The translations under genes were made by a program, and so were the position numbers. Of a stretch of DNA of 64,000 nucleotides, positions 1,045 through 64,000 are shown piece by piece. Location: the IMG/VR virus record IMGVR_UViG_3300007513_000001, positions 186,001 through 250,000 of that record; one strand, given 5' to 3'. Positions within the stretch are counted from its first letter, which is position 1. The number at the start of each line of letters is the position of its first letter. Under the pieces are notes generated by a model that saw only the letters and a list, made by a program, of their open reading frames with translations, made no database searches and was not told where the DNA came from.

Positions 1045-1085
1045 TGAATAGTTACTTGTAAGAGAAATTTTAGGAGCACAAATAA

Positions 1086-4000
1086 ATGGCTGAATTAACT
1101 TTTAAAAGTCCGGGAGTTGCAACAAGGGAGATTGACCTTTCAGGTCCGACTAGTGTTGCCCCTCAAGGTACCCCAGCTGGAATAATCGCTACGGCAAATC
1201 AAGGTCGAGCTTTTGTTCCAGTGACAGTTGCTACTTACCAAGATTTCATCGCAACATTCGGAGCTTCCGATGGCGAGAAATTTGGACCGTTAGCTATGAA
1301 CGAATGGATGAGAAATGCAAAGGCGGGTACTTATCTAAGAGTTCTCGGCGTTGGCGATGGAAAAAAGAGAATTACATCGCAAACAACAGATGCTGGTGGT
1401 TACGACATTTATCCTGGAGCAGTAAAAAATGCAGGATTTATTGTAGGGACCAAACAATTAAACGATAAAGGATACCTCAACACTAACGTTTATGCTTACG
1501 ACTATGGTGTAGCTGGCGGAACATATATGTTTGGCGCACTAATGTCTGAATCTGCAGGAAGTACAATATTTTCCGATGCGGGTTTGCAGAGCAAAAATTA
1601 TTCGTGGATTGGATATGGCGCAAAAGCAGTTCCAATTTTAAGAGCTGTTTTAATGGTTGCATCTGGTGTTACTTTAGGACTTTCTGGCAACTTAGTTAAA
1701 GGGCCGGGCGCTGGAGTTGTAACAGCTTCTGCCACAGGAACAAAGGGAATATTAAGCTCTGCGTTTGACGGCGGTGCAAGTTGGGGAGAGCTAGATCTTA
1801 CCTCGGCAAACCACTACAACTTTACAATGCTGTTAAACGGGCACAAGAACACCTCGGCTTATCCAAATACAATTACAGCTTCTATGTCTCCTTGGAGCCC
1901 TTCATATTTTACAAATGTATTCAACACAGATCCAACTAAACTACAGCAAGCTGGATATTATATGTACACGCATTATGATATTGCTCCAACTCTTGCGGTT
2001 GTTACTGGTACCGGAGTAGTTTCAGTCAATGCTTGGACCGGATCTTATGCAGCTTCGAACTATGAGCCCTGCTTATTCGTTCTAACAGCTTCTGATGGAG
2101 TTAACCAAGGAACGACTACTAAACCTAATTACGAAAACTTCTCTGACAGGTTCCGAACAGCTTTCTCTCCTTGGGCAATATCTCAGAAATTCGGTGGAAA
2201 ATATAAAAACTTGTTTAGATTCCACTGCTTAGATGACGGCCAATATCCAAACACTTTAACAAAAGTTTCTATTAGTAATTTTAAAAAGGGTGCCACTGAA
2301 GAAAATTATGGAACTTTCGATGTAGAAATTAGGGCTTTCGGAGACACCGACGCTGAAAAACAAGTTTTAGAATCCTACCTTGGAGTTAATTTAGATCCAA
2401 CTTCTGATGATTACATTGCAAGAAGAATTGGAAATGTCCACCAATACTTTGATTTTGACCACAAGGTCGCAAGTCAAAAATTGGTAATTGAAGGCATTCA
2501 TCCAAACATGAGTAAATACGTTAGGGTAGAAGTGCACAACGAAGTAGATGTTCAAAATACTCCGGTCACTTCCTTACCGATAGGATATCGTGGTCCTTAT
2601 CACTTAGTTACATCTGGTTCAGACATATTCTCAGATCCAGGTTATCCTGCAATGAATACTATTACAGGCTCAGCTGCTGACGCTGACGGTAGTGGGGTCA
2701 TGGCCCAAGGAACTGTAATCGCGCAATCAACTTGGGGCGAAAGAATGGTAGAACCCCCTATCCCTTATAGACTTTGTATCTCAAACAACACAGGAGATAA
2801 AAGAACGGCTAATAGCTCTTATTATTGGGGTGTCCAGTTTACTAAGCAAGATAGGATTTATGAAAAAGGCCCTAACGCTAGTAACGTTTTGGAAGAGTCA
2901 TTAGCTTCTTATACTAAATACTTTCCTCGGTTCGCCACCGGCCAACGACACGTTTCAGTCGGGAATAACGCCGGAGCTTTAGACGCTAGTGGAACCGTAT
3001 TAGACTCAGATAAATTTAATAACAATATCTTCACGCTCGAAAGAGTTCAAGTTCACACTAAATCTTCAGAAGACAAAGTAGATTCTAAAGAGTGGGCATT
3101 CTCAGTCTATAGAAGATCAGGGGTGTTAAGTTCTTCACTTCTAAAGAGCGATGGAACTTATTCAACTGGTCGCTTCTTAAATGTCGATAAAGACTTTGGA
3201 GATGTAGCTTCTCGCAAATACATGAAATTTACGATGTTTATGCAGGGAGGATTTGACGGCGTTAATATCTTCGATGAAGATAAAGCTAAGCTTAATAATG
3301 CTGCTGCATCCCGCGAGATGGATGATGAGAACCAAGGCTACGCGCAAGGTCCAACAGTTGCAACTTACATGAAAGCTATCGATGTAATGTCTGAAAAATC
3401 AGATGCTGATATTATGCTCTTAGCTATTCCTGGAATCCGCGAGACAAAAATTACTGATCACGCACTAGACAGAACTGAAGAGCGTTTCGATGCTATGTAC
3501 GTCATGGATATTGAAGAAAGAGACACTCAGAATAATGTAGTAACTGGATCTCTAGAGATAATTGGTGTTAATAACACTGTTACTAATTTTAAATCTAGAA
3601 ATCTTGATAGCTCATTTGGAGCTGCTTACTTCCCAGACACCTATATTACTGATCCAGCGACTGGAACCAATGTAAGGTGTCCACCATCAGTTTCAGTTTT
3701 AGGAGCTATGTCGTTAAACGATGCAGTTGCATATCCATGGTATGCTCCAGCAGGATTTACTCGAGGCGCTCTGTCTACTACTCTTTGGGCTCACGTCCAG
3801 TTGAGTCGAGCTAATTTAGACACACTTTATGATGCTGATATTAACCCAATAACAAACTTCCCAACTTCTAACGGGGTCGTAGTATTCGGTCAAAAGACAA
3901 TACTCCGGTCTGCTAGCGCTTTGGATAGAGTAAACGTTAGAAGGCTTCTTATCGATATTCGTAGAAAAGTTAGAAAAATTGCAGATACTTTCCTCTTTGA

Positions 4001-6369: not shown

Positions 6370-9300
6370 ATGGCCAATGACGATCAGCACCAGTTAGACA
6401 TCCAATCACAGATAAATAAAGTTATCGAAGCTCGTGCTGCGCTAATGAAAAATGTGACTTCTGAAATAAGCGCGCAAGTTTCAATGGCCCAGGAATTATG
6501 CAAGGCTTTAGATTGCGAAGATCTCGAAGGCATGCAAGAGAGGATGGATGGTTTCCACGAAGCTCTTAATAGAGCGGGAGATTCTGCTAGGGATATGGAT
6601 TCAACCCTAGTTGACATCGGCGAAGCCGCGGAGGATTCTGCCAGCTCAGCGAATAATTTAGTTAGTGAATTAGCAGATATTGCTCCAAAAGCCACGGGCG
6701 CCGTTGGGGCGATGAATGCGTTTAAGGGCGTAAAAACTTCTCTCCATGGCCTTTGGGATACTGTTAGTGGATTAGGCAGTTCTTTGATGAATATTGGCGG
6801 CGCTATAATGGGCGCTGTTTCTGCTGGAATAGGTTTTTTAGCTGATAAAGCTATGCAGGCTGGAAATGCTAATGTTGGCTTTGCTAACGCAATGAACAAA
6901 CTAAATGCCGCGTTTGGGGAATCTTCAGCGCAAGCAAAAAATGTGCGCGGAGCTTTTGATAATATAAAATCTGGCTCCAACGCAATGGGAGAGGCTGGAG
7001 TTTCTCTCACGGCCATTTATGGCCGAGGCCCAGATGGTATGGCTGCAGCCTTAGAAGATATAACTGAACTAGCTAAAGAGATGGGAACTGAGTTCAACAA
7101 GCTAGGCGACGACTTTGAAAAAAATGCTGGCCAGTATATGCTTGCTTATAAGGGCTTGGGACTCTCGGCCGAAGCTTTAGCAAATATAAACAAAGAAGCC
7201 ATGGCTGGTGGAAAAAAGACTTCCGATGTTTTAAAGATGCAGGCAAAGATGGTGGGTCATCTCTCTAAAGAGTATGGCGTATCCGTCAAGCAGATGGGAA
7301 AGAATTTGTCCGAAATGGCAGAGGCACATGAGACATTCGGAGGAATGTCTCAAAAGCAGTTAACTGCGACTGCAGCTTTTGCTGCGAAGCTTGGTGTTGA
7401 GATTAAATCCCTGGCAAGCGTTACTAAAAAATGGGACGATTTTGCCAGTGCGGCGGAAGGAGCTTCTGAATTGGCAGCCAGCTTTGGCATGGCTATTGAC
7501 ACTATGGATATGATGAATGCGGATCCAGCTGAGAAAATAGGGATGCTCAGAGACAGTTTCCACGCAGCAGGAAAATCTTTCGCAGATATGTCCAGGCAAG
7601 AAAAGGCCAGGTTGGCAGAGCTTTCAGGCGGACTCTCAACTAAAGAACTCGAGACAATGTTAGATCCAGCTAATGCTGGTTTATCTTTTGATGAGCTCGA
7701 AGCCGCAGCTCAAGATGCTGCCGATGGAGCAATCACTCAAGAAGAAGCCAATGTGATGTTAGCTAAATCTATTGAAAAGCTTACGGAAGCTTTTGGTGGA
7801 ATGACAAACGTTGGCGGACCGCTAGATGCGTTTTTGCAGGGTGTAACTCAGGGAATAATGAAGTCTCCACAAATGAGAGAGATTTTAAATAATTTCCGAG
7901 AAGTCTTAATGACTATCTACAACGCTGGAAAAGAAGTCGGTAAAATGTTCATGGAGCTCTTTCCCGGAATGGAACAGTTTGCGGGTGGTTTTGCTGAGCT
8001 TCTTAATCCTGAACAATGGAAAGCCATGATGGGAGATGTCGTTGAAGCTTTTAGAGAGTTCTTTATTCTGTTAGAGACAGATCCAGAAGCTGCAATGGAT
8101 AACTTGATAGAAAAAATTAAAACTATTTTTACTGACTTTTTTGCTGGTAACGAAGGCTCTAGCATGATGCAAGAAGGTCTACAAAAAATGTGGGGGGCTA
8201 TCCAGGGTATTGTTGGTTGGCTAGCCAAAAAATTAGCTGAATTTATGGCGCAAATATTTGATGCTCTTATGAAGAGCGCGCTGTTTAAGAAAGCTGCAAC
8301 TGCTCTTGGTATGTTTGTCGGCGCCAGATTTGCTCTTGGTTTAGCAATGGCTGCTGGGCAAGCAATGTTTGTCGAGTGGTTAAAGAATAAGTTTTTTCCA
8401 AAAGGTGCGGCTGATAAGATTGCTAAGACAGCTGGTAAAGGTGTTGGCGGCGCAGTCGGTGAAGGCGCAGAAGACGGAGTCAGGTCTAATAAAGGAATAA
8501 TAGAAGCTCTAAAGGAAATTACTGAGAAAGACATCAAAAAAGCTTTTAAAATTGGAATGTATTTAGTCGCGTTCGTTTCTATAGCTATGGTAGCGTTGGC
8601 TGGAGCTTTCTTTTTGGTATCTAAAATATTAGGTGCTCTTTCAGTAGAAGAAATGGTGAAGGGCATAGTAGGATTAGCTTCGGCATTAGGTGCAACTTGG
8701 GTAATGATTCAATTTGCTAAAATGATGAAGAAAGCTGATATCATGAAAGCTTCTATGGGTATGTTGGCCGCGGCGGGAATGTTTTTGGTATCTGGTTATT
8801 TATATGCTACAGGCTTAAAACTTATGCACGGTGTTCTCGAGGGCATTCCGTTGTTGCGAATGGTAGAGGTTATGGCTATGCTTGGTATGGCTCTGCTAGC
8901 AACTTGGGGTATGATCCTTTTGGGTTCTTTGCTGGTAGCCGATGGTGGAGTCATGATGGCCATGACAGCTCTCGGAATGCTCGCTGCTGGATTATTGTTC
9001 TTGATTACTGCTCCAATATTCGGTGCTGGCTTAGTGGCTTTACACGATACCATGGCCGGTATTGATCTCATGAGAATGATCGAAGTCATGGCGATGTTGG
9101 GAATGGCACTATTAGCAACTTGGGGGATGGTTATGGTTGGAGCTACATTAGGCTCTTCTCTCGTAGCCATCGGCCTTGCATTAATTGGTAGTTTGGCTGC
9201 TGGCGCTTTGTTTGTAGTCATGTCAACAGTTCTAGGCGCTGCGATGATAGAGTTTTATAATGCAATGTCTGGTATAGACGCAACAAGAATGATTCTTCTT

Positions 9301-11127
9301 TTATCAGCAATGGGTCAAGTTCTGCTAATGGTTACTTTGTTCATGCCAATTGCCGCTGCTTTAGGCTTGGTAGCCATGGCTTCTTTTGGAATGGGGATCG
9401 CTGTTGTGAAAAAAGGATTTAAAGTTATTGGAGAACTTGCTTCCTCGATGGCTGAATCGTTAGTTCCAGCTATAGAAACAATAGGCGCCATGCGAATCGG
9501 AGATCCAACCGCTTTTGAGAAAAAGATGGATGCTATTTTTCAAATTATTGAAGCTACTGAAAAATTCGGAGATATGGCAATAAAAATTGCTGTATTAGAT
9601 ACCATAGCAACGGCCGAAGGCGGCGAAGCTGGAGCGATACTAGAGGGAGCAGCTTCGTTTATAGATTCAATGCTTGGCGGTATGGTCGATCTAATAGATG
9701 CCATGGTGTTGATGACAAACTTAATAGGCGAAGATGATATAGGAAAACTTGGTGCAATGGGCAGTCTTATAGCCTCAATATCGACTTTAATGACATCACT
9801 TCAGCCTCCACCCGCTTTACTTGAAGCTATGAAACCATCATATAGTGTTGGAATGCTTGGAGTGTCAAGGCAAGCTCCAGACGTGGCGGGAATTATGGGA
9901 GCCTATGGTGGCGCAGTAGTACGAATCATGAAGACTATGACAAAGCACTTACCGCCAATGCTTAAATCTATTATGGAGCTTGATCTAGGCGAAGACCCCT
10001 GTAAAGCAATACAAAAAATGCAAGCCATCGCTATTGCAATAGACGCAATAGGCAAGATGGCAGCTACTATGGGTGGTATGGCAGCTGAAATGATGTGCAT
10101 CCATGAAAATCAGCGCCATTGGTATAGTAATGATGCTAGTATGACTGATACTATGAAAACTTATAATGGCGCGATTGTATCTATTATGAAATCCATGAAA
10201 CAGCACATTCCAGAAATGCTAGAAGTAGTTATCGAAGCTGCTAAAAAGATAGACAATCCAGAAAAAGCATTGAAAAGCATGGAAGTTGTATCTAAAGCTC
10301 TTACTGCTGTTGGGTCTTTTGCTTCAGGGATAGGATCAATCGCTTCTTTAATACCAGAAGATGATTCTTGGAACCCATTCGCCGATGATCCAGATAGGGC
10401 GGCTCAGTTGACCAACGATATAAGAGACATAGTTGATGCTGTTAAAGACGCCATACCTGGATTAGTTGAGGCTTTATTAAGTGTAGAGATTGGAAATCCC
10501 CAAGCTGCAATGGGCAAATTAGAAGTAGTAAGTGCTGTCTTAGAAAGAGTGGCTCAGTTTGGAAGAGTTATAAAAGGCATCGGTGGAGATATGGGCGATG
10601 CAGGAGGAGCATTAGCTTTTGCCGCTGATGCAACTAACGCATTTGATATAGTGACAACCATTATTACAGGCCACGGAAAGTCTATGGAAGGCAAGTCTAG
10701 CATGCGGGATCTGGTGACAGCTATTAATGATCTTCCAATTAGTAGAAGTACGGGCACAAACTTAGAAATCGCTGGTCAAATGATTGAACACGTTGCGCAA
10801 TTTATAAATCACTCAACAGCGATAATGGAGACAATTAGTGGCACATCATCTTTGGCAATTGGCACTGCTGTTGGCACCGCAGTAGATGCTTATAATGCAG
10901 TTTCTCAAGAACTAACAAGAATAGACCCCATAAACATTGACGCTATTATGTCTGCAGTTGAAACAGGGCTGCAAGTCAACAGAGATCAGATTACAGTCCA
11001 AGATAATGGGCTTACAATTCAGTTAAGCCTTAACGTTACTATGGAAGCTGACGACTTAGCAGAAGTGCTAGTTGAAAAGAAACTTGTTGTAGCCGGAACA
11101 GGCATGGAAAATCAAAACCCAAACTAG
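6370..11127 (+). CDS. Tape measure protein
   Basis: 1585 aa, Ala/Gly/Met-rich and helical, with hydrophobic internal repeats. Sits after the tube and chaperone genes. Confidence 0.85.
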   Translation: MANDDQHQLDIQSQINKVIEARAALMKNVTSEISAQVSMAQELCKALDCEDLEGMQERMDGFHEALNRAGDSARDMDSTLVDIGEAAEDSASSANNLVSELADIAPKATGAVGAMNAFKGVKTSLHGLWDTVSGLGSSLMNIGGAIMGAVSAGIGFLADKAMQAGNANVGFANAMNKLNAAFGESSAQAKNVRGAFDNIKSGSNAMGEAGVSLTAIYGRGPDGMAAALEDITELAKEMGTEFNKLGDDFEKNAGQYMLAYKGLGLSAEALANINKEAMAGGKKTSDVLKMQAKMVGHLSKEYGVSVKQMGKNLSEMAEAHETFGGMSQKQLTATAAFAAKLGVEIKSLASVTKKWDDFASAAEGASELAASFGMAIDTMDMMNADPAEKIGMLRDSFHAAGKSFADMSRQEKARLAELSGGLSTKELETMLDPANAGLSFDELEAAAQDAADGAITQEEANVMLAKSIEKLTEAFGGMTNVGGPLDAFLQGVTQGIMKSPQMREILNNFREVLMTIYNAGKEVGKMFMELFPGMEQFAGGFAELLNPEQWKAMMGDVVEAFREFFILLETDPEAAMDNLIEKIKTIFTDFFAGNEGSSMMQEGLQKMWGAIQGIVGWLAKKLAEFMAQIFDALMKSALFKKAATALGMFVGARFALGLAMAAGQAMFVEWLKNKFFPKGAADKIAKTAGKGVGGAVGEGAEDGVRSNKGIIEALKEITEKDIKKAFKIGMYLVAFVSIAMVALAGAFFLVSKILGALSVEEMVKGIVGLASALGATWVMIQFAKMMKKADIMKASMGMLAAAGMFLVSGYLYATGLKLMHGVLEGIPLLRMVEVMAMLGMALLATWGMILLGSLLVADGGVMMAMTALGMLAAGLLFLITAPIFGAGLVALHDTMAGIDLMRMIEVMAMLGMALLATWGMVMVGATLGSSLVAIGLALIGSLAAGALFVVMSTVLGAAMIEFYNAMSGIDATRMILLLSAMGQVLLMVTLFMPIAAALGLVAMASFGMGIAVVKKGFKVIGELASSMAESLVPAIETIGAMRIGDPTAFEKKMDAIFQIIEATEKFGDMAIKIAVLDTIATAEGGEAGAILEGAASFIDSMLGGMVDLIDAMVLMTNLIGEDDIGKLGAMGSLIASISTLMTSLQPPPALLEAMKPSYSVGMLGVSRQAPDVAGIMGAYGGAVVRIMKTMTKHLPPMLKSIMELDLGEDPCKAIQKMQAIAIAIDAIGKMAATMGGMAAEMMCIHENQRHWYSNDASMTDTMKTYNGAIVSIMKSMKQHIPEMLEVVIEAAKKIDNPEKALKSMEVVSKALTAVGSFASGIGSIASLIPEDDSWNPFADDPDRAAQLTNDIRDIVDAVKDAIPGLVEALLSVEIGNPQAAMGKLEVVSAVLERVAQFGRVIKGIGGDMGDAGGALAFAADATNAFDIVTTIITGHGKSMEGKSSMRDLVTAINDLPISRSTGTNLEIAGQMIEHVAQFINHSTAIMETISGTSSLAIGTAVGTAVDAYNAVSQELTRIDPINIDAIMSAVETGLQVNRDQITVQDNGLTIQLSLNVTMEADDLAEVLVEKKLVVAGTGMENQNPN

Positions 11128-25284: not shown

Positions 25285-27718
25285 AATCTATCAAAAGGAA
25301 GAGGTAATAAAAGAAACTAATCTATATTTTGGTGGAGATGAATTAGCAACTAGCGCTATAGTAAACAAATACTTGCTTAGAGACGCTGAGGGAAATTGGT
25401 TAGAAAAAAATCCAGACCAAATGCATAAAAGGTTATCTAAAGAGTTTGCTAGAATAGAAAAAAAGTATAACGGATCTAGAGCTCTTGACGAAAATCAAAT
25501 TTATGATTTGTTAAAGAATTTCAAGCAAATTATTCCCCAGGGTTCTCCCATGTTCGGGATTGGAAATGATTATGCCATCGCAAGTCTTTCAAATTGTGTA
25601 GTTGTTGATTCGCCAGCAGATGATATAAGTTCTATTTTAAATCGGGGTAAAGATTTAGCGAATTTGTTTAAAAGAAGGTGCGGGGTTGGAATCGATATAT
25701 CGACGCTCCGGCCAGAAGGGACTTTTGTTTCAAATTCTGCAAGAACAACAACTGGTGCTTGGAGCTTTGCAGATTTTTATAGTTACGTTTGTCGTATGAT
25801 AGGTCAAAATGGTCGCCGTGGTGCTTTAATGATCACTCTCGACGTTCGTCATCCCGACATCGAAAATTTTGTAACTATGAAGCATGATCTCAAGAAAGTT
25901 ACTGGCGCTAATGTTTCTGTAAAAATAAACGATGAATTCATGAGAGCTGTGGAAAATAAACAGCCATTTACTCTGCAGTTTCCAATAGACTCAGATAATC
26001 CAACTATAGTTAAAGAAATAGACGCGCAATCTTTATGGAGCGTTATTATAGATAGCGCTACGAAAACAGCAGAGCCCGGATTAATGATGTGGGATAATAT
26101 CCTCGAAGATCTCCCGGCAGAATCTTATAGTAGCGATGGATTTAAAACGATTACCACGAACCCTTGCGGAGAAATTCCTTTAAGCGCTTACGATTCTTGC
26201 AGATTAATAGCCATTAATTTAACTAGTTTCGTAAACAATCCATTTGAAGCGAGCGCCGCTTTTGATTTTGAAAAATTCAAAATGATCTCAAGATACGCGA
26301 TGAGATTAAGCGATGATCTTATTGATTTAGAAGCAGAAAAATTAAAAACTATATTGGAAAAAGTAGATACGGAAGATGAAAAAATTTTATGGACAAAACT
26401 TTTAAAAGCTTGCTTAAACGGTAGGAGAACCGGTTTAGGAACTCTTGGTTTGGGTGATGTATTAGCCTCTCTTGGTTTGGTTTATGGTTCTGAAGAATCT
26501 ATTTTTCTTATAGAAAAGATATACGAAAGCTTAAAAATATCAGCTTATACAGAAAGCGTTATTCTTTCTGAAGAAAGGGGCCCTTTTAAAGTTTGGGATT
26601 GGGAAAAAGAAAAAGACAACTCTTTTATTAAGCGGCTCCCTGAAAGTCTCAAGTCTGCTATTAAAAAACACGGCCGCCGAAACATAGCTTGTTTAACAAA
26701 CGCCCCTACTGGCACGTGTTCAATTGCAGCTCAAACTTCAAGCGGAATTGAGCCTATTTTTAGGTTAAGCTACACAAGAAGAAAAAAAATAAATCCAGAC
26801 GAAAATGAAAAACCAGATTTCGTTGATAGCCTTGGAGATAAATGGAAAGAGTTTGAAATATATCATCATTCCGTAAAACAATACATGGAGATTAACAAAA
26901 AAAATAAAGATAATCTTCCAAACTATTTTATTACTTCTGAAGAAATTGACTGGTCTAAAAGAATCGAAGTTCAAGCTGCCATCCAGCGCCACATCGATCA
27001 CTCCATAAGCAGTACTATTAATTTACCCGCCAACACTAAACCAGAAGTTGTCGACACCCTTTACAGAAAAGCTTGGAAGCATGGTTTGAAAGGGGTGACA
27101 GTTTACGTTGACGGATCTAGAGCTGGAGTGCTAATCACTAAAAAAGAAAAGAAGTCCAAACTACAGTACCACTCTGCTCCAAAAAGAGAAGAAATGTTGA
27201 GTTGTGAGATACATAGAGCTTCTATAACAGGAGATGATTGGACTATTTTAGTTGGGTTGTACGATGGAAAGCCATACGAAATTTTCGGAGGTCTTTCAGA
27301 ATATGTAGAGATCCCTAGAAAGCATACTAGCGGAAAAATTAGAAAAAGGTCTAGAAAAACAGTAGAATCAAAATATGATCTAATTTTAGGTGAAGGAGAA
27401 GACGAATTAACTATAAAAGATGTAGTAAGCGTTTTTAGAAACCCTAACCATACAGCTTTTACAAGGACTATTTCACTGTCGATGCGCCACGGAGTGCCAG
27501 TCCAGTATTTAGTAGAGCAGCTTCAAAAAGATAAAGAAGCTGATTTATTTTCTTTCAGTAAAGTTATAGCTAGAGTGCTAAAAAAATATATTAAAGACGG
27601 AACAAAAGTAAGCAACGGAATCATAGATTGTAATTGTGAAAATAGAGAGCATTCTAAAGTGGTGTATCAAGAAGGGTGCGCTACTTGTCTGACTTGCGGA
27701 CATGCTAAGTGTGGATAA
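25277..27718 (+). CDS. nrdJ: Class II (adenosylcobalamin-dependent) ribonucleotide reductase
   Basis: SNC, GRRGALM, TNPCGEIPL, APTGT, ISSTINL and KGVTVY motifs, with a C-terminal EGC..C..CG. No beta-subunit gene nearby. Confidence 0.9.
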   Translation: MAKIYQKEEVIKETNLYFGGDELATSAIVNKYLLRDAEGNWLEKNPDQMHKRLSKEFARIEKKYNGSRALDENQIYDLLKNFKQIIPQGSPMFGIGNDYAIASLSNCVVVDSPADDISSILNRGKDLANLFKRRCGVGIDISTLRPEGTFVSNSARTTTGAWSFADFYSYVCRMIGQNGRRGALMITLDVRHPDIENFVTMKHDLKKVTGANVSVKINDEFMRAVENKQPFTLQFPIDSDNPTIVKEIDAQSLWSVIIDSATKTAEPGLMMWDNILEDLPAESYSSDGFKTITTNPCGEIPLSAYDSCRLIAINLTSFVNNPFEASAAFDFEKFKMISRYAMRLSDDLIDLEAEKLKTILEKVDTEDEKILWTKLLKACLNGRRTGLGTLGLGDVLASLGLVYGSEESIFLIEKIYESLKISAYTESVILSEERGPFKVWDWEKEKDNSFIKRLPESLKSAIKKHGRRNIACLTNAPTGTCSIAAQTSSGIEPIFRLSYTRRKKINPDENEKPDFVDSLGDKWKEFEIYHHSVKQYMEINKKNKDNLPNYFITSEEIDWSKRIEVQAAIQRHIDHSISSTINLPANTKPEVVDTLYRKAWKHGLKGVTVYVDGSRAGVLITKKEKKSKLQYHSAPKREEMLSCEIHRASITGDDWTILVGLYDGKPYEIFGGLSEYVEIPRKHTSGKIRKRSRKTVESKYDLILGEGEDELTIKDVVSVFRNPNHTAFTRTISLSMRHGVPVQYLVEQLQKDKEADLFSFSKVIARVLKKYIKDGTKVSNGIIDCNCENREHSKVVYQEGCATCLTCGHAKCG

Positions 27719-56626: not shown

Positions 56627-57667
56627 ATGCCCAAGAGTAAAAGATCCAACTTATTAAAAACGATAGACAGCATTCTGTTCGAAGACGTATGGCAAAAGTA
56701 CGGTTCCGAATATATGTCTCATCCAATGGATCAAAAAGATTTTGAAGATACCACAGTACCACCAAGCTTGCCCATACAAGCTTTGGATCAAATGGCAACT
56801 CAGCTTACAGTAGAGCGTCCGCCAGTTGAAGATCCCGATTATATTCCTGATGGCGTAGAAGAGCTTTCTAGATCTGCTAGCACCCTTGCGCAGCAAGTTC
56901 CGAGAGATCAAGTCGCTTTTTTCTACGAGAAGATAAAAAAAGATTTAGAAGTTGCAATTGAAAATGAAAACAATCCAGAAACAGTAACTACTAAAAAAGA
57001 AGAAGAAGAGGCGGAAGAAGCTTCGCAGGCAGTTGAAAAAATGGACGAAACTAAAAACTTAAGAAGATATTTAAAAGGTTTGCTAAAAGAACAAGGTCGA
57101 GGACCTTCTGATTGGTCTCAGTTTAAACTGGGTAAACATTATGATGAAGATGAGCCAGAGGAATGGGAACTAGAAGACGAAGATCCACAACCCGCTGGAG
57201 GCTCTAATAAAGATACTATAAAGGGCAAACACATAGCAAAATACTACGGGAAAGCTGGTCCATCAGGAGTAAACGTATCTAGCGATAGATTAATGCAGAA
57301 TTTTCTCGCCCCACTTTTTAGCGTACCCTCAGAAGATTTAAGAGATGCAATGGATTATATTCGTTATTTCTATCGCGAGCACGCTACCGGAGAAGAGCCA
57401 CAAGGATCTGAGCAGTCATTTGTGAGTTATGTTCTTAAAAAAGTGGTGAAAGATTTAGTTAAAAAGAATCCTGACATAACTCAAACTCTTTTGCCTGCGG
57501 TTGTACAGCACGTTAAAGAAATGCCAGATAAACAATTTTCAAAACTCATAGACAAAGCTTCGAAAGAATCTTCTAGTGAAATTAAAGCTAGGGGAGAACT
57601 TGCGGATACTTTAGAAAGAGAAGATCCAGAACAATTTGAGGTCCTTCAAGATTTAGGGCTAGCTTAA
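56627..57667 (+). CDS. Hypothetical protein, probable virion protein
   Basis: Late-type motif upstream; internal LRRYLKGLLKEQ motif. Confidence 0.55.
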   Translation: MPKSKRSNLLKTIDSILFEDVWQKYGSEYMSHPMDQKDFEDTTVPPSLPIQALDQMATQLTVERPPVEDPDYIPDGVEELSRSASTLAQQVPRDQVAFFYEKIKKDLEVAIENENNPETVTTKKEEEEAEEASQAVEKMDETKNLRRYLKGLLKEQGRGPSDWSQFKLGKHYDEDEPEEWELEDEDPQPAGGSNKDTIKGKHIAKYYGKAGPSGVNVSSDRLMQNFLAPLFSVPSEDLRDAMDYIRYFYREHATGEEPQGSEQSFVSYVLKKVVKDLVKKNPDITQTLLPAVVQHVKEMPDKQFSKLIDKASKESSSEIKARGELADTLEREDPEQFEVLQDLGLA

Positions 57668-58047
57668 TGAACCTTCAAGATGTCTTAAAAGAGTATTTTG
57701 AAACTGAAGATTCTCCAAGGTCTTCTTTGAATGAGAGCATGGGCATGTTTTGTTCAGTTCCGGTGCAGCCAACGCAAAGAGACGATTGGGAAGTTGTGGC
57801 TAGTCCAAACCGCTTGAATAAAACATATGAATTTGAAAATTCGCAAATTCTTAAAGCTTTTTTACTAGAAATGCTAGACTATCAAGAGTCTGTTTCTCAT
57901 CATGGTAAATTTATTGTAGATTATCCAAAGGTCACCGTAGAAGTATATACACATGATCTAGACGATGTCACTGAAATAGATTTGGAATGGTCAAAAATGG
58001 CTGACAATATATACAGAGACGTTAATGACTATGCCCCAAGATACTGA
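57667..58047 (+). CDS. Pterin-4a-carbinolamine dehydratase-like protein
   Basis: W......L.K.Y.F, HH and V.V...THD...VT..D pattern. Confidence 0.75.
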   Translation: MNLQDVLKEYFETEDSPRSSLNESMGMFCSVPVQPTQRDDWEVVASPNRLNKTYEFENSQILKAFLLEMLDYQESVSHHGKFIVDYPKVTVEVYTHDLDDVTEIDLEWSKMADNIYRDVNDYAPRY

Positions 58048-58441: not shown

Positions 58442-58604
58442 TGAATTCGATTTTTCTAAATTCGTGAAAGATATAGAAAAAAGAGAGAACGAAGCTAAAA
58501 AGAAAAGGCTTCAACATCAAGAAGGTCAAAAAGACCATCCTATTAGAAAGCTGAATATTCTCACTAGAGAACTATGGCAAAATCGTATTAAATGGAGAAA
58601 ATAA
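58434..58604 (+). CDS. Small 56-aa protein missing from the ORF track (MADEFDFSKFVKDIEKRE...NRIKWRK)
   Basis: GGAGG SD 6 nt upstream; its TAA overlaps the ATG of the next gene (TAATG); fills the apparent gap exactly. Confidence 0.75.
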   Translation: MADEFDFSKFVKDIEKRENEAKKKRLQHQEGQKDHPIRKLNILTRELWQNRIKWRK

Positions 58605-59254
58605 TGAATTTTTCTCAATTAGACGAAATAACAAAATCTTCAGTAACGCAAGCTATTAAAGAATTATACACTCAGCTGCTAGAAGAAAAAGAACAAACAA
58701 CACAACATAAAACATCTTCTGAAATAGATGACCTCAATCTTAGAGCTAAAAAAGAAGCTCAATCTACCGATGAAGAAGAAGAAGAAGAAAAAGTAGTAGT
58801 AAAATCTACATCTACTGAAAAAGCTTCTTCAGAAGAAAAACCTGAAATCGTCGTTCCTGAAAAGCTGCCTGACGTTTTAGAGCCAGAATCTATCATTAAA
58901 TCTATAAACGTGATAAGATCTGGAAACTCTTTAAAAGATGCGGGCGTTCAAGAGAGATTCCAAATTTATTTTGATAAATTAGATCCCGCAGAAAAAGTAG
59001 CTCTTAAGGGATTTTTAGACGGGCTCGCCCAAGTTATAGCTGGTGATATACCTGGACAAGATGCTGTTGCACCTTCGTCTCCGCCATATAACGTCTCAAT
59101 GAAAGACAAACCTTTACAAAAAAAATCTAGCGCTAAATCATCTCCAGATGCTGGGCTTGCTGTCGGCAATAGCCAACCAGACGCTCCTATTATTGTCGGA
59201 GAAAGTGCTAATAAACAATGGGTTAAAAATGTATTCTCAAAAAATAAAAAATAG
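58604..59254 (+). CDS. Hypothetical acidic protein
   Basis: TAATG coupling; N.IRSG.SL segment; LLEE motif. Confidence 0.6.
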   Translation: MNFSQLDEITKSSVTQAIKELYTQLLEEKEQTTQHKTSSEIDDLNLRAKKEAQSTDEEEEEEKVVVKSTSTEKASSEEKPEIVVPEKLPDVLEPESIIKSINVIRSGNSLKDAGVQERFQIYFDKLDPAEKVALKGFLDGLAQVIAGDIPGQDAVAPSSPPYNVSMKDKPLQKKSSAKSSPDAGLAVGNSQPDAPIIVGESANKQWVKNVFSKNKK

Positions 59255-59261
59255 TCTTTTT

Positions 59262-59390
59262 GGCGGGCGGCCGTTCCTATCTCAGGTCGACCATAGGTTA
59301 AGCTACATTTCGCTACTTTCTGGTGCTTCTCCCAGCGACTTAAGTCGCTATCAACCCCAAGCAGGATAGTTAGCTAGCCGGTCGTCCGCC
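59262..59390. ncRNA. Candidate structured non-coding RNA
   Basis: GC-rich intergenic island closed by a 12-bp helix, with several internal hairpins. Confidence 0.45.
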
Positions 59391-59411
59391 TCTTATATAG
59401 TAGATAAAATA

Positions 59412-59672
59412 ATGAAAACTCTTAGAAAACTAATAAAAGAAATGATTGCCCAAGAAGATTCTTGGAGAAGGGTGGATGGCTCTGTAGTTCCGTTTGGCTG
59501 CCCAGAGTGCGTTGATGATATTACTGGTAGAATAGAAGATACTTCTACGCTAAGAGATCAAATACCTAAGGGGTCTGCAGATCGCGCTCATTTAAATGGC
59601 GTGTTAGCTTTTTTAAGAAAAAAGAACAGACAAGCTCAAAAACTTACGCATAATTTTGAGGATAATCTGTAA
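59412..59672 (+). CDS. Hypothetical protein with CxxC
   Basis: N-terminal LRKLIKEMI motif; CPEC. Confidence 0.55.
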   Translation: MKTLRKLIKEMIAQEDSWRRVDGSVVPFGCPECVDDITGRIEDTSTLRDQIPKGSADRAHLNGVLAFLRKKNRQAQKLTHNFEDNL

Positions 59673-59697
59673 AAAACTCCCTTTTTTATGGTATAAT
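59668..59697 (+). promoter_or_regulatory. Sigma70-like extended -10 promoter
   Basis: TGTAAA-N18-TATAAT with a TG extension. Confidence 0.55.
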
Positions 59698-59722
59698 ATA
59701 TCTATAATAAGGAGTAACGTCT

Positions 59723-61003
59723 ATGGGTGGTGTAGGTAAACATCTGAGTCATACTTGGGAAAACCTTGATATGACATTTGGAGAACTAAAAGGAATTCTT
59801 TCTGAGGCAAGTCTGGGAACACTGGAGGTTGTCGAGAAGTTTGACGGAGTTAACTTGCACTTTTGCGTTGACTCTCGTGGAATTCCACGATTCGCAAGAA
59901 ACGATACGCATAAAATGGGCGGCGGTCTCAATTTGAGAGAGCTTAGAGATTTCTTTGAAGGTCACCCAGCCCAGTCAACATTTGTGCGGGGTGCTACGGC
60001 AATTTGCGAGATGCTCACCGATGTTTGGTGGCCTCTTGGATTCACACGAAGAAATTGGGTTAATTGTGACGTCATCGACACAAAGAGGCCTCAATTACTT
60101 AATTATTCTCGCCCCGCAATTACTCTTCACGAAGTCGCTTCTTTTGATTCTTCTGGCAAAAAGTTAAACGTTAGTGAAAGCGTCCAAAATCAATTTAAGC
60201 GACTCATAGAATCAATGCCAGCAGCAGTCTCTTTTGATGGAGAAGAATTCGACGTTGTTGGGCCTCAAAAGATAGAGCTCAATCCGGTTGCTGGCACAGA
60301 AATCTATGATAGCGTGCTGCAGGCTATTTCTCACTGTCAATCAGCGACGCAAGTTAATAACGAAGATACTCTTCGAGAGTTTGCTTATCGCTCTATTTAC
60401 GCTGGAGTTACAAGCCAGATGAATATTTCAGAAAGACGAGCTAAAGATCTTGCTAATCTCATTGTTGGATATGACTCTCCAAAACTAGTAGAGATTAAAA
60501 AAGGTTTAAATCCCTCAGTAGCAAAACTAGTTTCTTCTGTTGGAAGAGCTAACGTAAGAGGCAAAGTAATAGCTGAAGCAATCCTTCCTATTGAAACCGC
60601 AATATCAACCCTTGGATCTTATATGCTGGATGGAGTATCTTCGGTACTTGTAGATAATCCTTCTGGAGAATGCGATAGAATCAAACTTGAATACATTTCA
60701 GCGCGCACTGTTTGCGAAAGCATTGATGATGGATATCAAGCACAAAGAATGGAGATCGTAGAAAAACATGTAAGAAAAATAGAGCTTGAAAATTATTCTT
60801 TGGAAAATTCGACATTTCAAGGCTTTGCAATTGAGGGTGTTGTTTTCGAACAATCCGGACAAAAATACAAACTGACAGGCCACTTCGCTGCAATCAATCA
60901 AATAGTCGGAACCACTCGCTACGGCCGAGGAAAAATTCCTGCTCTTGATGGAAACTCAGCAGAAAAGCAATATTCTATTTTAGAGAATCTGTCAGTCGGA
61001 TAA
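59723..61003 (+). CDS. Ligase-type covalent nucleotidyltransferase-fold protein (DUF6267-like)
   Basis: Motif I EKFDG, motif IV EGVV and motif V YKLTG; N-terminal HLSH..E. Confidence 0.6.
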   Translation: MGGVGKHLSHTWENLDMTFGELKGILSEASLGTLEVVEKFDGVNLHFCVDSRGIPRFARNDTHKMGGGLNLRELRDFFEGHPAQSTFVRGATAICEMLTDVWWPLGFTRRNWVNCDVIDTKRPQLLNYSRPAITLHEVASFDSSGKKLNVSESVQNQFKRLIESMPAAVSFDGEEFDVVGPQKIELNPVAGTEIYDSVLQAISHCQSATQVNNEDTLREFAYRSIYAGVTSQMNISERRAKDLANLIVGYDSPKLVEIKKGLNPSVAKLVSSVGRANVRGKVIAEAILPIETAISTLGSYMLDGVSSVLVDNPSGECDRIKLEYISARTVCESIDDGYQAQRMEIVEKHVRKIELENYSLENSTFQGFAIEGVVFEQSGQKYKLTGHFAAINQIVGTTRYGRGKIPALDGNSAEKQYSILENLSVG

Positions 61004-61567
61004 TAGAGCTTCTACGTTTTGATCTACGGTGTATTGAGAATAGCCTCTGTGGGTGTACACTAGTTCCATGTCTTCGTTAATGTAGAAAAAGGTTGGCCAA
61101 CTTTCAAGAGGCCACCCGTGGGGATCTGAGGGCTTAAGTAAACTTCTGTTACCAGCTAATACTGGTTCTGATATATTAAAAGTTTCTGCCCACCAAGTCA
61201 AATTGTTTGTTGTTGGATCTTCTCCAAAACTATTTTCTATTAATACAGTTATGTAATTTATTTCTGGAAAAGCAGCTACTGTTTCATCTATTCCACCAGC
61301 TGCAGATTGACAAGGGCCACACCACATAGCAGAAAAATCTAATACGATTGGCTCTCCATAAAAATCATACAAATTAACTTCGTTTCCGTTTTGATCTTTT
61401 AGAGAAAAATTGCAAGGATGACTCCCCACTTCAGCATCACAAGAATCCCAAGTTGCAAATGGGTATGGGTCTTGTTCACCGTCATCGATAATAACTGGAG
61501 TGGGTCCGCACCCATTACATCCGATCAGGCAAGTTGCTAAAATAATTGCAGAAAGTATTTTTTTCAT
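60992..61567 (-). CDS. TlpA/thioredoxin-like lipoprotein
   Basis: Lipobox LIGC, DFSAMWCGPC and WPTF. GAGGA SD before the ATG at 61567. Confidence 0.85.
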   Translation of the reverse strand: MKKILSAIILATCLIGCNGCGPTPVIIDDGEQDPYPFATWDSCDAEVGSHPCNFSLKDQNGNEVNLYDFYGEPIVLDFSAMWCGPCQSAAGGIDETVAAFPEINYITVLIENSFGEDPTTNNLTWWAETFNISEPVLAGNRSLLKPSDPHGWPLESWPTFFYINEDMELVYTHRGYSQYTVDQNVEALLSD

Positions 61568-61586
61568 AATGTCCTCTTTGTTTTTT

Positions 61587-63197
61587 TTATTGGCAAGACC
61601 AAATAGCATAATTAATGTTTATAGAGCTTCCATCGGCAGGTGATATTGAGAAAATAATCGTATTAGAAGAAGCTTCATAAGACCAATCAGATGAAACTAC
61701 TCCATCAACAGTCACCTCTATAGTGTCTTCAATTGGTGTATCAGATAGTGCAAACGCTAGTTGAGCGAGTGATTCTCTAGCCAATGTATCCATTGTGCTG
61801 CTCCAATCCGAAGCGCATATTGACATGAAAGTTCCACCTAAATCGTTTACTACGTCATAATAACCATCGCCAAACTGCGCCCCTCCATTAGTGGAACATC
61901 CAGAAGGATAATCTCCAGCAATTGCGTGAGCAACAACGAGGTCTGAAGAGCTTTTTAAAGTGGAAAGATTAGAAGAATAATCGGATGGTGACTTCGTAGG
62001 ATCACGATATGATTGGGATCCATCAGCTTCATCAGAAACATATACCACGACTAATCTTGCATCTGTTCGAAAAAATCCAGTTGAAGAAGTTGGAGAAGCA
62101 TCTCCACCATTGGTAGATTCATACGCTGCCCATAATCCAGCTTCAAGTGCGCTTCCCCTTGTTCCAATATAGTCGATTTGATCGTTGAATTCTGTTACAG
62201 GGTCAGGTGTCGAATTAGTAATAATATCGCCTACGAAATCAGGACTATCAGTAGTGATAAGCGCTATTTGATAAGAAACCCCCGCTGCGGAGAAAGCATT
62301 CATAAATGTGTCAAAGTTGTTCTGGAGATTTGTTTGATTTCCTCCCATGGATCCGGAGTTGTCAATAACAAAAAGAATATCTACGTCTACAGTTCCATCT
62401 TGTGTAAAAGAATCTGTTACCCAAGCCTCGACTTCTCCGAGTCCGTCTTGATCTGCAAAAGCCGTTGGTGTAGCTGGATCGTTAGACGAGATTTCTATAT
62501 ATGAAGCGTCGTCTAAAGTATCTACAGGGATATAATCTACATTAAGCTCTATTGTGTCTCCAGGAGAAACAGTGATAGGTAGTGCTCCCCATGAAGATTC
62601 ATATTCTTGTATAGAAAAATCTACGGGCAAGCTGGCAAAAAACTCAATATCTGAAATTATAAGATTTGAGTTTCCGATATTTCCTATTTCTACTGGAATT
62701 GTATCATCACATCCAAGATAAATTTTTCCGAAATCGTGGTAGTCTGGAGAAACTGTAATAACTGGTGCATCTCCAGATCCATCGAGAGTAACATTAACAA
62801 TAGGCTCATCTTCATCGTTAGAAACAATGCTAATTGTTTCGTAGTTAGTCTCATATGTCCCGGGAGAGTAAGAAACTATCAGAGCTACAGAGTTCAATGG
62901 CTCCACAATGCCAGTCGGCATAGATGTCAACGCGAAATTAGAATTTCCACTATGAAGATATATGTTAGAAATGTTGAGATCACCATTGCCGACATTGTCA
63001 ATATTGATAATAACATCTTGAGTTTCACTCCCTGCGCTTAGCGCTCCATAGCTGTGATGCGTGGGGTCTACTTCAATTTCAGGTGCCGTAATTCCAGGCT
63101 CTGCAGGTTCAACGTCTGGAGATATTTTATAGTCACTAGTACAGCTAATTGAAAGCAAAAATAAAGAAGAAAAAAAGAATTTAGTCCACGTATACAT
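61587..63197 (-). CDS. Lipoprotein with two Ig-like (choice-of-anchor D/ASH-like) domains and a vWA domain
   Basis: Lipobox SISC, repeated N.G...L.I / SND....P segments, MIDAS DNSGSM and VSDE. GAGGTG SD before the ATG at 63197. Confidence 0.8.
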   Translation of the reverse strand: MYTWTKFFFSSLFLLSISCTSDYKISPDVEPAEPGITAPEIEVDPTHHSYGALSAGSETQDVIINIDNVGNGDLNISNIYLHSGNSNFALTSMPTGIVEPLNSVALIVSYSPGTYETNYETISIVSNDEDEPIVNVTLDGSGDAPVITVSPDYHDFGKIYLGCDDTIPVEIGNIGNSNLIISDIEFFASLPVDFSIQEYESSWGALPITVSPGDTIELNVDYIPVDTLDDASYIEISSNDPATPTAFADQDGLGEVEAWVTDSFTQDGTVDVDILFVIDNSGSMGGNQTNLQNNFDTFMNAFSAAGVSYQIALITTDSPDFVGDIITNSTPDPVTEFNDQIDYIGTRGSALEAGLWAAYESTNGGDASPTSSTGFFRTDARLVVVYVSDEADGSQSYRDPTKSPSDYSSNLSTLKSSSDLVVAHAIAGDYPSGCSTNGGAQFGDGYYDVVNDLGGTFMSICASDWSSTMDTLARESLAQLAFALSDTPIEDTIEVTVDGVVSSDWSYEASSNTIIFSISPADGSSININYAIWSCQ

Positions 63198-64000
63198 TAT
63201 ATCCCACCTCCACGAGAGATCCATAGTCTGGAGTAGTGTCAAGTTTTACCGTATTTGTTTCTTCTGTGTAAGTCCATTCATAAATTGGGAATCTGTCAAC
63301 ATAGACGATAATTGATTCTAAAATAGGTTCCGGTTCGCTCAACTGGATAGAGTTTTGTTGTTGGGTGAGATAAGAAGATTCCGATAGCCAAACCGACCAA
63401 TCGTCGGTTTGCAAGTCTACAGTATCTTTTCCATATAGGTTAGCTAGCTCAATATATTTGAATCCTATTTCTTGAGCCCAACCATTCCCAGTTCCATCGT
63501 CTGGATTTACAACACAGACTACATCATGTCTTACATCTTGAAATTCGTCATGCATCCAATCGTAGAATAAATCAGAGGTGATAGCGCTTTGTTCATCTTC
63601 ATCAGAAATCAAAAATAACAGAAAGTCCGCCTCTTGACGCCTGAAGTCGTATAAATCTATGTTCGAAAAAAAAGTATAAGTAGAAGCAAAACCTTCTTCT
63701 GGCATTGTCATTGGAAGAAGGCCAGGCGCCATGAGCATGTCAATCGCTGAAGACGATGCATCATACGGGCCTGTATAAGATAGGTTGCTTGGGTCCATGG
63801 TAATATACCCAAATCGATAGTCAAGAGTGAGAGATTCAATATCTGCTCTCAATATATCCATTCCGTCTGCAACATCGTCATAATTGTCGCTCATAGAACC
63901 CGAGGTATCTAGTACGACTAAGACATCTAGCTCTTCTAGCTGTACTGGTTGAATATAAGAGTCAACAACTACTCTTACTTCGTGGTTATCAGTAACTTGA
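63181..64000 (-). CDS. vWA-domain protein, paralogue of the downstream gene (5' end outside the window)
   Basis: The frame is open to the window edge and reads LDVLVVLDTSGSM (MIDAS). Also ISDEDEQS and a shared C-terminal W.Y....NT....P..G....Y domain. Confidence 0.8.
   Translation of the reverse strand, partial: QVTDNHEVRVVVDSYIQPVQLEELDVLVVLDTSGSMSDNYDDVADGMDILRADIESLTLDYRFGYITMDPSNLSYTGPYDASSSAIDMLMAPGLLPMTMPEEGFASTYTFFSNIDLYDFRRQEADFLLFLISDEDEQSAITSDLFYDWMHDEFQDVRHDVVCVVNPDDGTGNGWAQEIGFKYIELANLYGKDTVDLQTDDWSVWLSESSYLTQQQNSIQLSEPEPILESIIVYVDRFPIYEWTYTEETNTVKLDTTPDYGSLVEVGYNVYVD

Follow-up and report, generated by a model that had tools for sequence, protein, structure and literature searches.

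A covarying three-armed RNA structure without an Rfam match in a predicted RNA-ligase gene module of jumbo phages

Between two genes of a 293-kb marine phage lies a 129-nt GC-rich, non-coding island that, on comparative sequence evidence, encodes a structured RNA: it is predicted to fold as a three-way junction, its fold has been kept in distant relatives through compensating mutations, it matches no known RNA family, and it sits inside a gene module containing a protein with a predicted RNA-ligase fold. The stretch analysed (henceforth the window) comprises 64,000 nucleotides, bases 186001–250000 of a 293,409-bp virus record (IMG/VR IMGVR_UViG_3300007513_000001) that has direct terminal repeats and is estimated to be complete. 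The genome is 39% G+C, whereas the island is 56% G+C and occupies most of a 157-nt gap between two open reading frames (ORF220 and ORF86, named for their lengths in amino acids). Genes in the vicinity are tightly packed and all neighbouring genes are on the + strand. Coordinates of the element and of its surroundings, given as window positions, are listed in the table.

Features of the element and its neighbourhood (window positions).
Feature	Position (strand)	Sequence or motif	Observations
Whole element, three-way junction	59262..59390 (+)	129 nt	Covariance-model match over the full length, 71.6 bits on +, 12.3 bits on −; single copy in the 293-kb genome; stops in all three + and all three − frames of this copy and in nearly all frames of the homologues
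P1, 5′ strand	59262..59273 (+)	GGCGGGCGGCCG	Pairs with 59379–59390; 10–14 bp in all 14 homologues; nearly invariant, but position 4 covaries (G-C / A-U / U-A)
P1, 3′ strand	59379..59390 (+)	CGGTCGTCCGCC	G6·U and G9·U wobbles exist only on the + strand
P2 hairpin	59276..59297 (+)	CCUAU / 12-nt loop / AUAGG	7 of 9 aligned stem columns with double-sided changes, e.g. CCUAU/AUAGG, CUUCU/AGAAG, AGAUUCA/UGAGUCU, GGAUUG/CAAUCC
Self-complementary stretch of the P2 loop, candidate kissing-loop dimerisation site	59285..59292 (+)	GGUCGACC	6–10 nt RNA palindrome at or near the 3′ end of the loop in every homologue
P3, 5′ strand	59302..59305 (+)	GCUA	Pairs with 59375–59378; stacked on P1; covaries as GCUA/UAGC, GUGA/UCAC, GCGAU/AUCGC and as 9-bp versions in clade B
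P3, 3′ strand	59375..59378 (+)	UAGC	
P5, 5′ strand	59325..59328 (+)	GCUU	Pairs with 59359–59362 (AAGC); 6 of 7 aligned columns with double-sided changes
Internal loop, 5′ strand	59329..59333 (+)	CUCCC	C-rich core (such as CUCCC, CCCCC or GCCCC) unpaired in all homologues
P6 hairpin	59334..59349 (+)	AGCGAC-UUAA-GUCGCU	6 of 6 stem columns with double-sided changes; loop sequence free to vary
Internal loop, 3′ strand	59350..59358 (+)	AUCAACCCC	C-rich; AUCCUCCC or UCCUCCCC in clade B, UUCCC or CCCCCC in clade A
Pyrimidine tail, possible 3′ end or terminator U-tract	59391..59394 (+)	UCUU	UCUU or UUUU follows P1 in all long-form homologues; UUUUAUUUUU in clade B
−10-like hexamer (inferred only)	59250..59255 (+)	AATAGT	7 nt before G1, overlapping the ORF220 stop codon; TATTTA, TTTAAT or TAATAT at about the same distance in homologues
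ORF220, upstream module gene	58592..59254 (+)		Stop codon 7 nt before the RNA; conserved upstream of the RNA, or of the ligase, in nearly every locus with enough flank
ORF86, small CxxC protein	59412..59672 (+)		Starts 21 nt after the RNA
Ligase promoter	59669..59700 (+)	GTAAAAAA-N15-TATAAT with TG	Conserved before the ligase in all relatives
426-aa protein with a predicted RNA-ligase fold (DUF6267-like)	59723..61003 (+)	E38-K39-x-D41-G42	Starts 333 nt after the RNA

The element was first recognised in a first-pass annotation made from the sequence alone, and the observation reported there holds. The two ends of the island pair over 12 bp, with two G·U pairs on the + strand, and the internal complementarities CCTAT/ATAGG, AGCGAC-TTAA-GTCGCT and (A)GCTA/TAGC(T) are present and were confirmed by comparative data as P2, P6 and P3, respectively. 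Two further complementarities that it listed, CTATC/GATAG and CTGG/CCAG, occur in the sequence but are not used by the covariation-supported consensus structure. The + strand of the island folds at −45.6 kcal/mol (z = −2.8, with 1 of 200 shuffles as good) and the minus strand with z = −2.0. Conservation with covariation in relatives shows that the element is far more than chance.

A blastn search of the phage collection found no nucleotide match, and a single-protein scan of viral contigs also returned nothing; relatives came only through a protein word search and alignment-based scans. The 426-aa protein downstream of the element has homologues at 77–25% identity, and their contigs are syntenic: a pterin-4a-like gene, two small ORFs, the ORF220 homologue, a gap, the ligase-like gene, and then convergent AhpC-like and VWA/Ig genes. 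The gap holds a homologous element in 14 distinct long-form sequences (the window and the relatives' loci that we label L005, L033, L006, L034, L007, L009, L013, L015, L036, L037, L014, L041 and L040), with close variants found afterwards in L206, L207 and L209. Ligases neighbouring the homologous elements are only 38–77% identical. A freshwater clade carries a short form of 73–75 nt (L016 and L057). Pattern scans keyed on P1 found nothing genuine elsewhere in viral contigs, returning one true locus and four chance hits; a scan of bacterial genomes returned hits mostly in high-GC genomes, which were taken for chance without inspection. In three other virus records, from relatives that lack the element at this site, the covariance model found no copy elsewhere, although this result is limited by the sensitivity of the model.

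Independent single-sequence folds give the same plan in nearly every homologue, with z from −2.2 to −4.9: a terminal helix (P1), a hairpin (P2), a helix stacked on P1 (P3), a helix closing a large internal loop (P5) and a terminal hairpin (P6). Alignments of distant members guided by a covariance model were poor and picked up a minus-strand row; covariation was therefore counted on a structural alignment of the 14 sequences made by hand and checked letter for letter against the loci. Of 491 helix cells 482 are canonical on the + strand, and 28 of 45 helix columns show changes on both sides. Because this alignment was fitted to the structure we repeated the test on an unfitted MAFFT alignment of nine clade-B sequences. 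From it RNAalifold recovered P1, P2, P3, P5 and P6 de novo (38 pairs, 16 of them with double-sided, compensatory changes). On this alignment 95.3% of cells pair, against 85.1±1.1% in shuffles; none of 500 shuffles reached either the observed pairing or the observed number of covarying pairs, and sliding the 3′ partners by 1–3 columns reduced pairing to 40–54%. Furthermore, a covariance model built from only three clade-A sequences found every clade-B copy at full length on the + strand when filters were off. No reading frame is consistently open across the homologues on either strand.

All 32 non-Watson-Crick pairs in the helices of the hand alignment are G·U or U·G on the + strand. On the minus strand these would be A·C mismatches, leaving 450 rather than 482 canonical cells. 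Covariance-model scores agree: 17–157 bits on the + strand against 10–20 bits on the minus strand. Folding energy alone, however, does not separate the strands (the minus strands of the homologues fold with z from −0.7 to −4.8). The RNA is thus on the + strand, and the suggestion of the first-pass annotation that a tRNA-like molecule is read from the minus strand, starting after a TACTAT box and ending in CCGCCA, is rejected. The TACTAT box is present in the window, but the corresponding flank is not conserved in homologues, and the CCA-like end exists only on the minus strand: the + strand ends GCC-UCUU.

The element does not correspond to a known RNA family. Against the 4227 models of Rfam 15 there was no hit at gathering score in the 64-kb window, none overlapping the element at E≤10, and none in the element in eight homologous loci at E≤5. 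ARAGORN found no tRNA or tmRNA gene in the window, whereas the same program finds eight tRNAs and a tmRNA elsewhere in the genome. A retron is rejected, given that there is no match to RVT_1 anywhere in the genome and that the downstream genes are ORF86 and the ligase. A profile search of the complete genome for a Ro60 (TROVE) domain (PF05731) likewise found nothing, although the controls responded; a host-encoded Ro60 is not excluded by this result. The first-pass annotation had named as refutation either no transcript and no covarying homologues, or a match to a known family; no family matches and covarying homologues exist. The core interpretation of the first-pass annotation is supported: a novel structured non-coding RNA of about 130 nt that is not a tRNA, tmRNA, SRP RNA or known ribozyme, lying next to a ligase-fold gene. 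Two of its details, the minus-strand reading and the two helices absent from the conserved fold, are wrong.

Three features of the structure are unusual. The first is that P1 is conserved in sequence and not just in pairing: it reads GGCNGGCGG...CCGYCNGCC with a single covarying position, whereas the other helices change freely. This points to sequence-specific recognition of P1 rather than to stability alone. The second is the self-complementary stretch in the P2 loop, which reads GGUCGACC, GUCGAC, GUCGGC (with G·U), GAACCGGUUC, GAGCUAGUUC (with G·U) or GAUCGAUC. The changes (GGUCGACC to GAUCGAUC, GAACCGGUUC to GAGCUAGUUC, and GUCGAC to GUCGGC) are compensating or wobble substitutions that keep self-pairing: G-C to A-U at positions 2 and 7, and C-G to U-A at the two central, adjacent bases. 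The central tetrads UCGA, UCGG, CCGG and CUAG are all self-complementary, and both departures from perfect DNA symmetry are G·U on the + strand. Adjacent central bases cannot pair within one hairpin, and the simplest reading is pairing between two copies, that is, a kissing dimer. Self-duplex energies are −6 to −16 kcal/mol and remain favourable after the cost of opening the loop; however, shuffle P values for individual loops are only 0.02–0.5 and the palindrome could partly be a short extension of the P2 hairpin, so dimerisation is inferred rather than demonstrated. The third feature is the large internal loop around P6, both strands of which are C-rich in every long-form homologue (cores such as CUCCC, CCCCC, GCCCC and CCUCCC). 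A search for complementarity of 11 nt or more between the RNA and either strand of the phage genome returned matches at chance level only.

How the ends of the RNA would be formed is a matter of inference. G1 is always preceded by U and a T-rich run, and an A/T-rich −10-like hexamer lies 5–7 nt upstream. The phage's clear promoter motif, GT(A/G)AAAAA-N15-TATAAT with TG upstream of the −10, occurs 14 times on the + strand of the genome, but between 52 and 62 kb of the window it is found only in front of the ligase, and no such motif lies within 7 kb upstream of the element. The RNA thus lies at the end of a long transcription unit: it may have a weak promoter of its own, may be cut out (for example by RNase P, which favours U−1/G+1 on a stack of roughly 12 bp), or may simply end the operon. 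A scan for intrinsic terminators reported no site in this region, but its rule (a loop of 3–8 nt followed by at least 5 U in 8) leaves no room for a helix enclosing 105 nt, and P1 with its UCUU or UUUU tail could still terminate transcription. Among public sequencing runs only DNA runs, and no RNA run, contain this phage; a discrete transcript is not shown.

The neighbouring genes place the RNA in a module. The 426-aa protein carries a KxDG motif, residues E38, K39, D41 and G42 are invariant in 21 homologues, and its AF2 model is confident (pLDDT 87). The closest structural matches to this model are RNA ligases: Foldseek top hits are Rnl3, Rnl1 and Trl1 (E = 5.7e-4 for archaeal Rnl3, 2vug), and VIA Z is 8.7–6.7 over 37 consecutive ligase entries, including T4 Rnl1, Trl1, REL1, NgrRnl, Rnl2 and Rnl3. 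Pfam gives no ligase match, whereas the Atlas relates the protein to viral DUF6267 proteins, which are often fused to a cytidylyltransferase-like domain (CTP_transf_like); the protein is an RNA ligase by predicted fold and motif alone. ORF220 has no match in Pfam or PHROG and no named Atlas family. ORF86 is a helical protein (AF2 pLDDT 85) with no informative PDB match; it is homologous across three RNA-bearing clades and belongs to a wider family of small proteins. Profile searches of all the loci obtained show ORF220 and an ORF86-like domain fused in one frame in locus L212, and ORF86 fused to the ligase in locus L064, and the order ORF220–ORF86–ligase is kept in distant phages, where an ORF of roughly 75 aa occupies the place of the RNA. 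The three proteins therefore form one functional module, with the RNA inside it. The fusion of ORF220 to ORF86 in L212 raised the possibility of an intron or of translational bypass, but this was rejected: ORF220 keeps its own stop codon, ORF86 keeps its own start codon, and the RNA persists where ORF86 is absent.

On a tree of the ligases the RNA is present in clade A (7 rows, support 100/100), clade B (11 rows, 95/93) and the short-form clade (100/100). Two clades of 11 and 5 rows that lack the RNA at this site group with these, on branches of weaker support. The tree needs 3 label changes, against 15.1 in shuffles. The likeliest history is that of an ancestral cassette of RNA plus ORF86 that was lost twice; ORF86 alone was lost at least three more times, while the RNA was never lost alone. 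The RNA has thus been kept across roughly 60% protein divergence, is dispensable for the ligase as such, and ORF86 appears to depend on it, although the events are few and the pattern only suggestive.

Taken together, these data establish a previously undescribed family of roughly 130-nt structured RNA in a lineage of marine and freshwater jumbo phages: the analysis itself shows that the element is non-coding and single-copy, that selection has maintained it at the RNA level on the + strand, that it folds as a three-way junction, and that it lies inside the conserved module ORF220–RNA–ORF86–ligase-fold protein. Everything beyond this is inference, including expression, dimerisation, binding to any module protein and ligase activity. 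Our preferred reading, which we regard as about as likely as not, is that the element is released as a discrete small RNA, with a 5′ end at G1 (from the weak −10-like element or by RNase P-type processing after U−1) and a 3′ end at P1 plus its U/C tail; that it pairs with a second copy through the P2 loop; and that it acts in trans as the RNA partner of the ligase module. In this view P1 would be the protein handle, and the two C-rich strands would be the surface that binds a G-rich RNA (GGAG/GGGG-like) or a module protein. A bolder version, which we consider unlikely although the evidence does not rule it out, is that the RNA is the guide or scaffold subunit of a phage RNA-ligase ribonucleoprotein: P1 would anchor ORF86, ORF220 or the ligase, the palindromic loop would make the particle dimeric, and the facing C-rich strands would form a bipartite pocket, analogous in geometry to an H/ACA pocket or a bridge-RNA loop, that base-pairs with the two G-rich halves of a broken host or phage RNA and presents them for sealing – an RNA-guided repair system used against host anti-phage ribonucleases.

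Other explanations need to be weighed against this. It is possible, though we doubt it, that the element is an elaborate intrinsic terminator or 3′-end protecting structure that acts only in cis for the long operon ending with ORF220 and insulates that operon from the ligase promoter. Its position fits: it starts 4–15 nt after the ORF220 stop codon in every homologue, ends in a GC-rich helix followed by UCUU or UUUU(AUUUUU), and is followed by the next phage-type promoter. However, a terminator does not need about 105 nt of internal structure kept by compensatory changes, a conserved palindromic loop or two conserved C-rich strands; the U-tract is weak in clade A; the sequence of P1 is conserved beyond what stability alone would require; and sister clades have no terminator at all at this junction. 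In addition, ORF86 starts shortly after the element in four lineages, in the window with no phage-type promoter motif in between, and so needs read-through. Equally tentative is the idea that the RNA is dedicated to ORF86, either as a cis-regulatory leader controlling its translation or as its partner in a small RNP or a type III toxin-antitoxin-like pair in which the RNA neutralises the protein. In the RNA-bearing clades ORF86 is never found without the RNA, the RNA persists after loss of ORF86 in at least three lineages, and both are absent together from the two RNA-less clades, as expected if the protein depends on the RNA. Yet the RNA is retained without ORF86 in most homologues and so has a role of its own, distant phages carry ORF86-like proteins with no such RNA, ORF86 has no nuclease-like fold match, and there are no internal or other repeats comparable to the tandem direct repeats of about 36 nt that precede a ToxN-like endoribonuclease in ToxI systems.

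Two further readings are very unlikely. The GC-rich 12-bp terminal inverted repeats, the length of about 130 bp, the T-rich flanks and the presence or absence of the element at one site among related phages could suggest a miniature inverted-repeat mobile element, or another DNA-level palindrome such as a protein binding site or origin, without RNA function. But there is one copy per genome, its presence follows the ligase phylogeny, and covarying internal helices with wobble pairs confined to one strand are not explained by selection on DNA. Least likely of all is a minus-strand tRNA-like RNA, for which only the stable minus-strand folds and the TACTAT box speak.

Phage-encoded structured RNAs with solid comparative support are few, and those known (pRNA, GOLLD and ROOL) have each revealed unexpected biology. 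The present RNA is small enough for direct biochemistry and structural work, and the self-complementarity of its loop appears to be under selection, which suggests an RNA homodimer. Should it prove to work with the ligase, it would be a second, independent case of an RNA partner in an RNA-repair system, after Y RNA with Ro60 and RtcB, and would provide a handle on how jumbo phages counter host attacks on RNA; should it be only an ornate terminator, it is still a well-defined new RNA motif for Rfam.

Comparison with known systems reveals partial resemblances. Like a Rho-independent terminator, the element presents a GC-rich helix followed by U-rich sequence at the end of an operon, but here the 'loop' is about 105 nt of conserved, covarying structure and the U-tract is short in clade A. 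C-rich-motif regulatory sRNAs (RsaE/RoxS and the UCCC-motif sRNAs of S. aureus) also have several unpaired YCCC/CCUCC motifs that could pair with G-rich Shine-Dalgarno-like sequences; in the phage RNA these lie on both strands of one internal loop rather than in hairpin loops, and there is no Rfam match. Palindromic kissing-loop sites (the HIV-1 DIS, and kissing contacts in ROOL, GOLLD and OLE homo-oligomers; PMC12286853) likewise expose a self-complementary sequence of 6–10 nt in a hairpin loop with substitutions that keep the self-complementarity, although the phage RNA is not a genomic RNA, is far smaller than ROOL or GOLLD and is unrelated to them in sequence, and its dimerisation is only inferred. 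The packaging RNA (pRNA) of phi29 is a phage-encoded RNA of about 120 nt with a helix joining its ends, a three-way junction and loops predicted to pair between copies; its loops, however, are cross-complementary rather than self-complementary and close a ring of five or six copies on the portal, whereas the single palindromic loop found here predicts dimers, there is no match to the Rfam pRNA model, the phage is a 293-kb virus with terminal repeats rather than a phi29-like podovirus, and the gene context is a ligase module, not packaging. The nearest functional analogy is Y RNA (YrlA) of bacterial Ro60-RtcB RNA-repair operons (Chen et al. 2014, PMC4201824; jumbo-phage TROVE systems and RNA repair are treated in PMC7824862). 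Membership fails on every defining feature tested except the pyrimidine-rich loop and the ligase context: P1 is an uninterrupted helix without the bulged Ro-binding site, there is no tRNA-like T/D domain, no Rfam Y RNA model matches, no TROVE/Ro60 gene occurs in the phage, and the ligase has an ATP-dependent, Rnl-type fold and is not RtcB. What the two share is a small RNA of about 100–130 nt whose ends form a sequence-conserved closing stem, with pyrimidine-rich unpaired internal regions and a U-rich 3′ tail, embedded in a gene set that contains an RNA ligase, in the phage by predicted fold.

Two gene fusions in other phages bear on the organization of the genes that surround the RNA. In locus L212 an ORF220-like domain and an ORF86-like domain share one reading frame, while in locus L064 an ORF86-like domain shares one frame with the ligase domain. 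These Rosetta-stone fusions tie the three genes of the window (ORF220, ORF86 and the ligase-fold gene) into one module. Distant phages with the same module carry, at the position where this clade has the RNA, a conserved small ORF of about 70–76 aa of unknown function: shared motifs include LPxGG and DDHxRM.

A short form of the RNA, 73–75 nt in length, is found in a freshwater clade (loci L016 and L057). The short form keeps P1, with an A-U to G-C compensation at position 9, together with two hairpins; however, it lacks both the C-rich internal loop and the long palindrome. ORF86 follows it. Within the phage genome itself (G000) there is also a 14-nt exact direct repeat of nt 33–46 of the RNA (AGGTTAAGCTACAT), but given that about one 13-mer match is expected by chance, the repeat is probably meaningless.

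The ligase gene is preceded by a phage-specific promoter-like motif, GT(A/G)AAAAA-N15-TATAAT with TG upstream of the −10. The motif occurs 14 times on the + strand of the genome and never on the minus strand, and in front of the ligase gene it is conserved in all relatives. The + strand operon also contains a pterin-4a-carbinolamine dehydratase-like gene (PF01329, E 2e-11) that is conserved in all syntenic relatives. On the other side, the ligase-fold gene and an AhpC/thioredoxin-like gene converge and overlap by 12 nt; behind them lies a gene encoding a 551-aa protein with VWA and HYDIN/ASH Ig-like domains. Outside the window the phage carries its own tmRNA gene (tag peptide ANNNYHFEADRLAA, as given by ARAGORN) and 8 tRNA genes, the latter in two clusters near the genome ends.

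Coordinates of features in the phage genome and in the loci of other phages
Sequence	Position	Strand	Feature
Genome G000	72354-72761		tmRNA gene
Genome G000	7607-9859 and 274609-279563		tRNA gene clusters
Genome G000	212761-212774 (window 26761-26774)		Direct repeat of RNA nt 33-46
Window	57667-58047	+	Pterin-4a-carbinolamine dehydratase-like gene
Window	58592-59254		ORF220
Window	59412-59672		ORF86
Window	59669-59700	+	Promoter-like motif (13 other sites in the genome)
Window	59723-61003	+	Ligase-fold gene
Window	60992-61003		Overlap of ligase-fold and AhpC/thioredoxin-like genes
Window	60992-61609	-	AhpC/thioredoxin-like gene
Window	61587-63242	-	VWA plus HYDIN/ASH Ig-like protein
L212	760-1725		ORF220-like/ORF86-like fusion
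L064	862-3288		ORF86-like/ligase fusion
L210	1209-1436		Small ORF at the position of the RNA
L025	about 980-1190		Small ORF at the position of the RNA
L020	about 1033-1220		Small ORF at the position of the RNA
L064	about 727-945		Small ORF at the position of the RNA
L016	2621-2693		Short form of the RNA
L057	805-879		Short form of the RNA
L021	1048-3441		Ligase-fold/cytidylyltransferase-like fusion
L026	1459-3807		Ligase-fold/cytidylyltransferase-like fusion

Fusion is also a feature of ligase-fold homologues in other phages: in loci L021 and L026 the homologue is joined to a cytidylyltransferase-like (PF01467) domain, an arrangement that the Atlas shows to be common for the DUF6267-like family.
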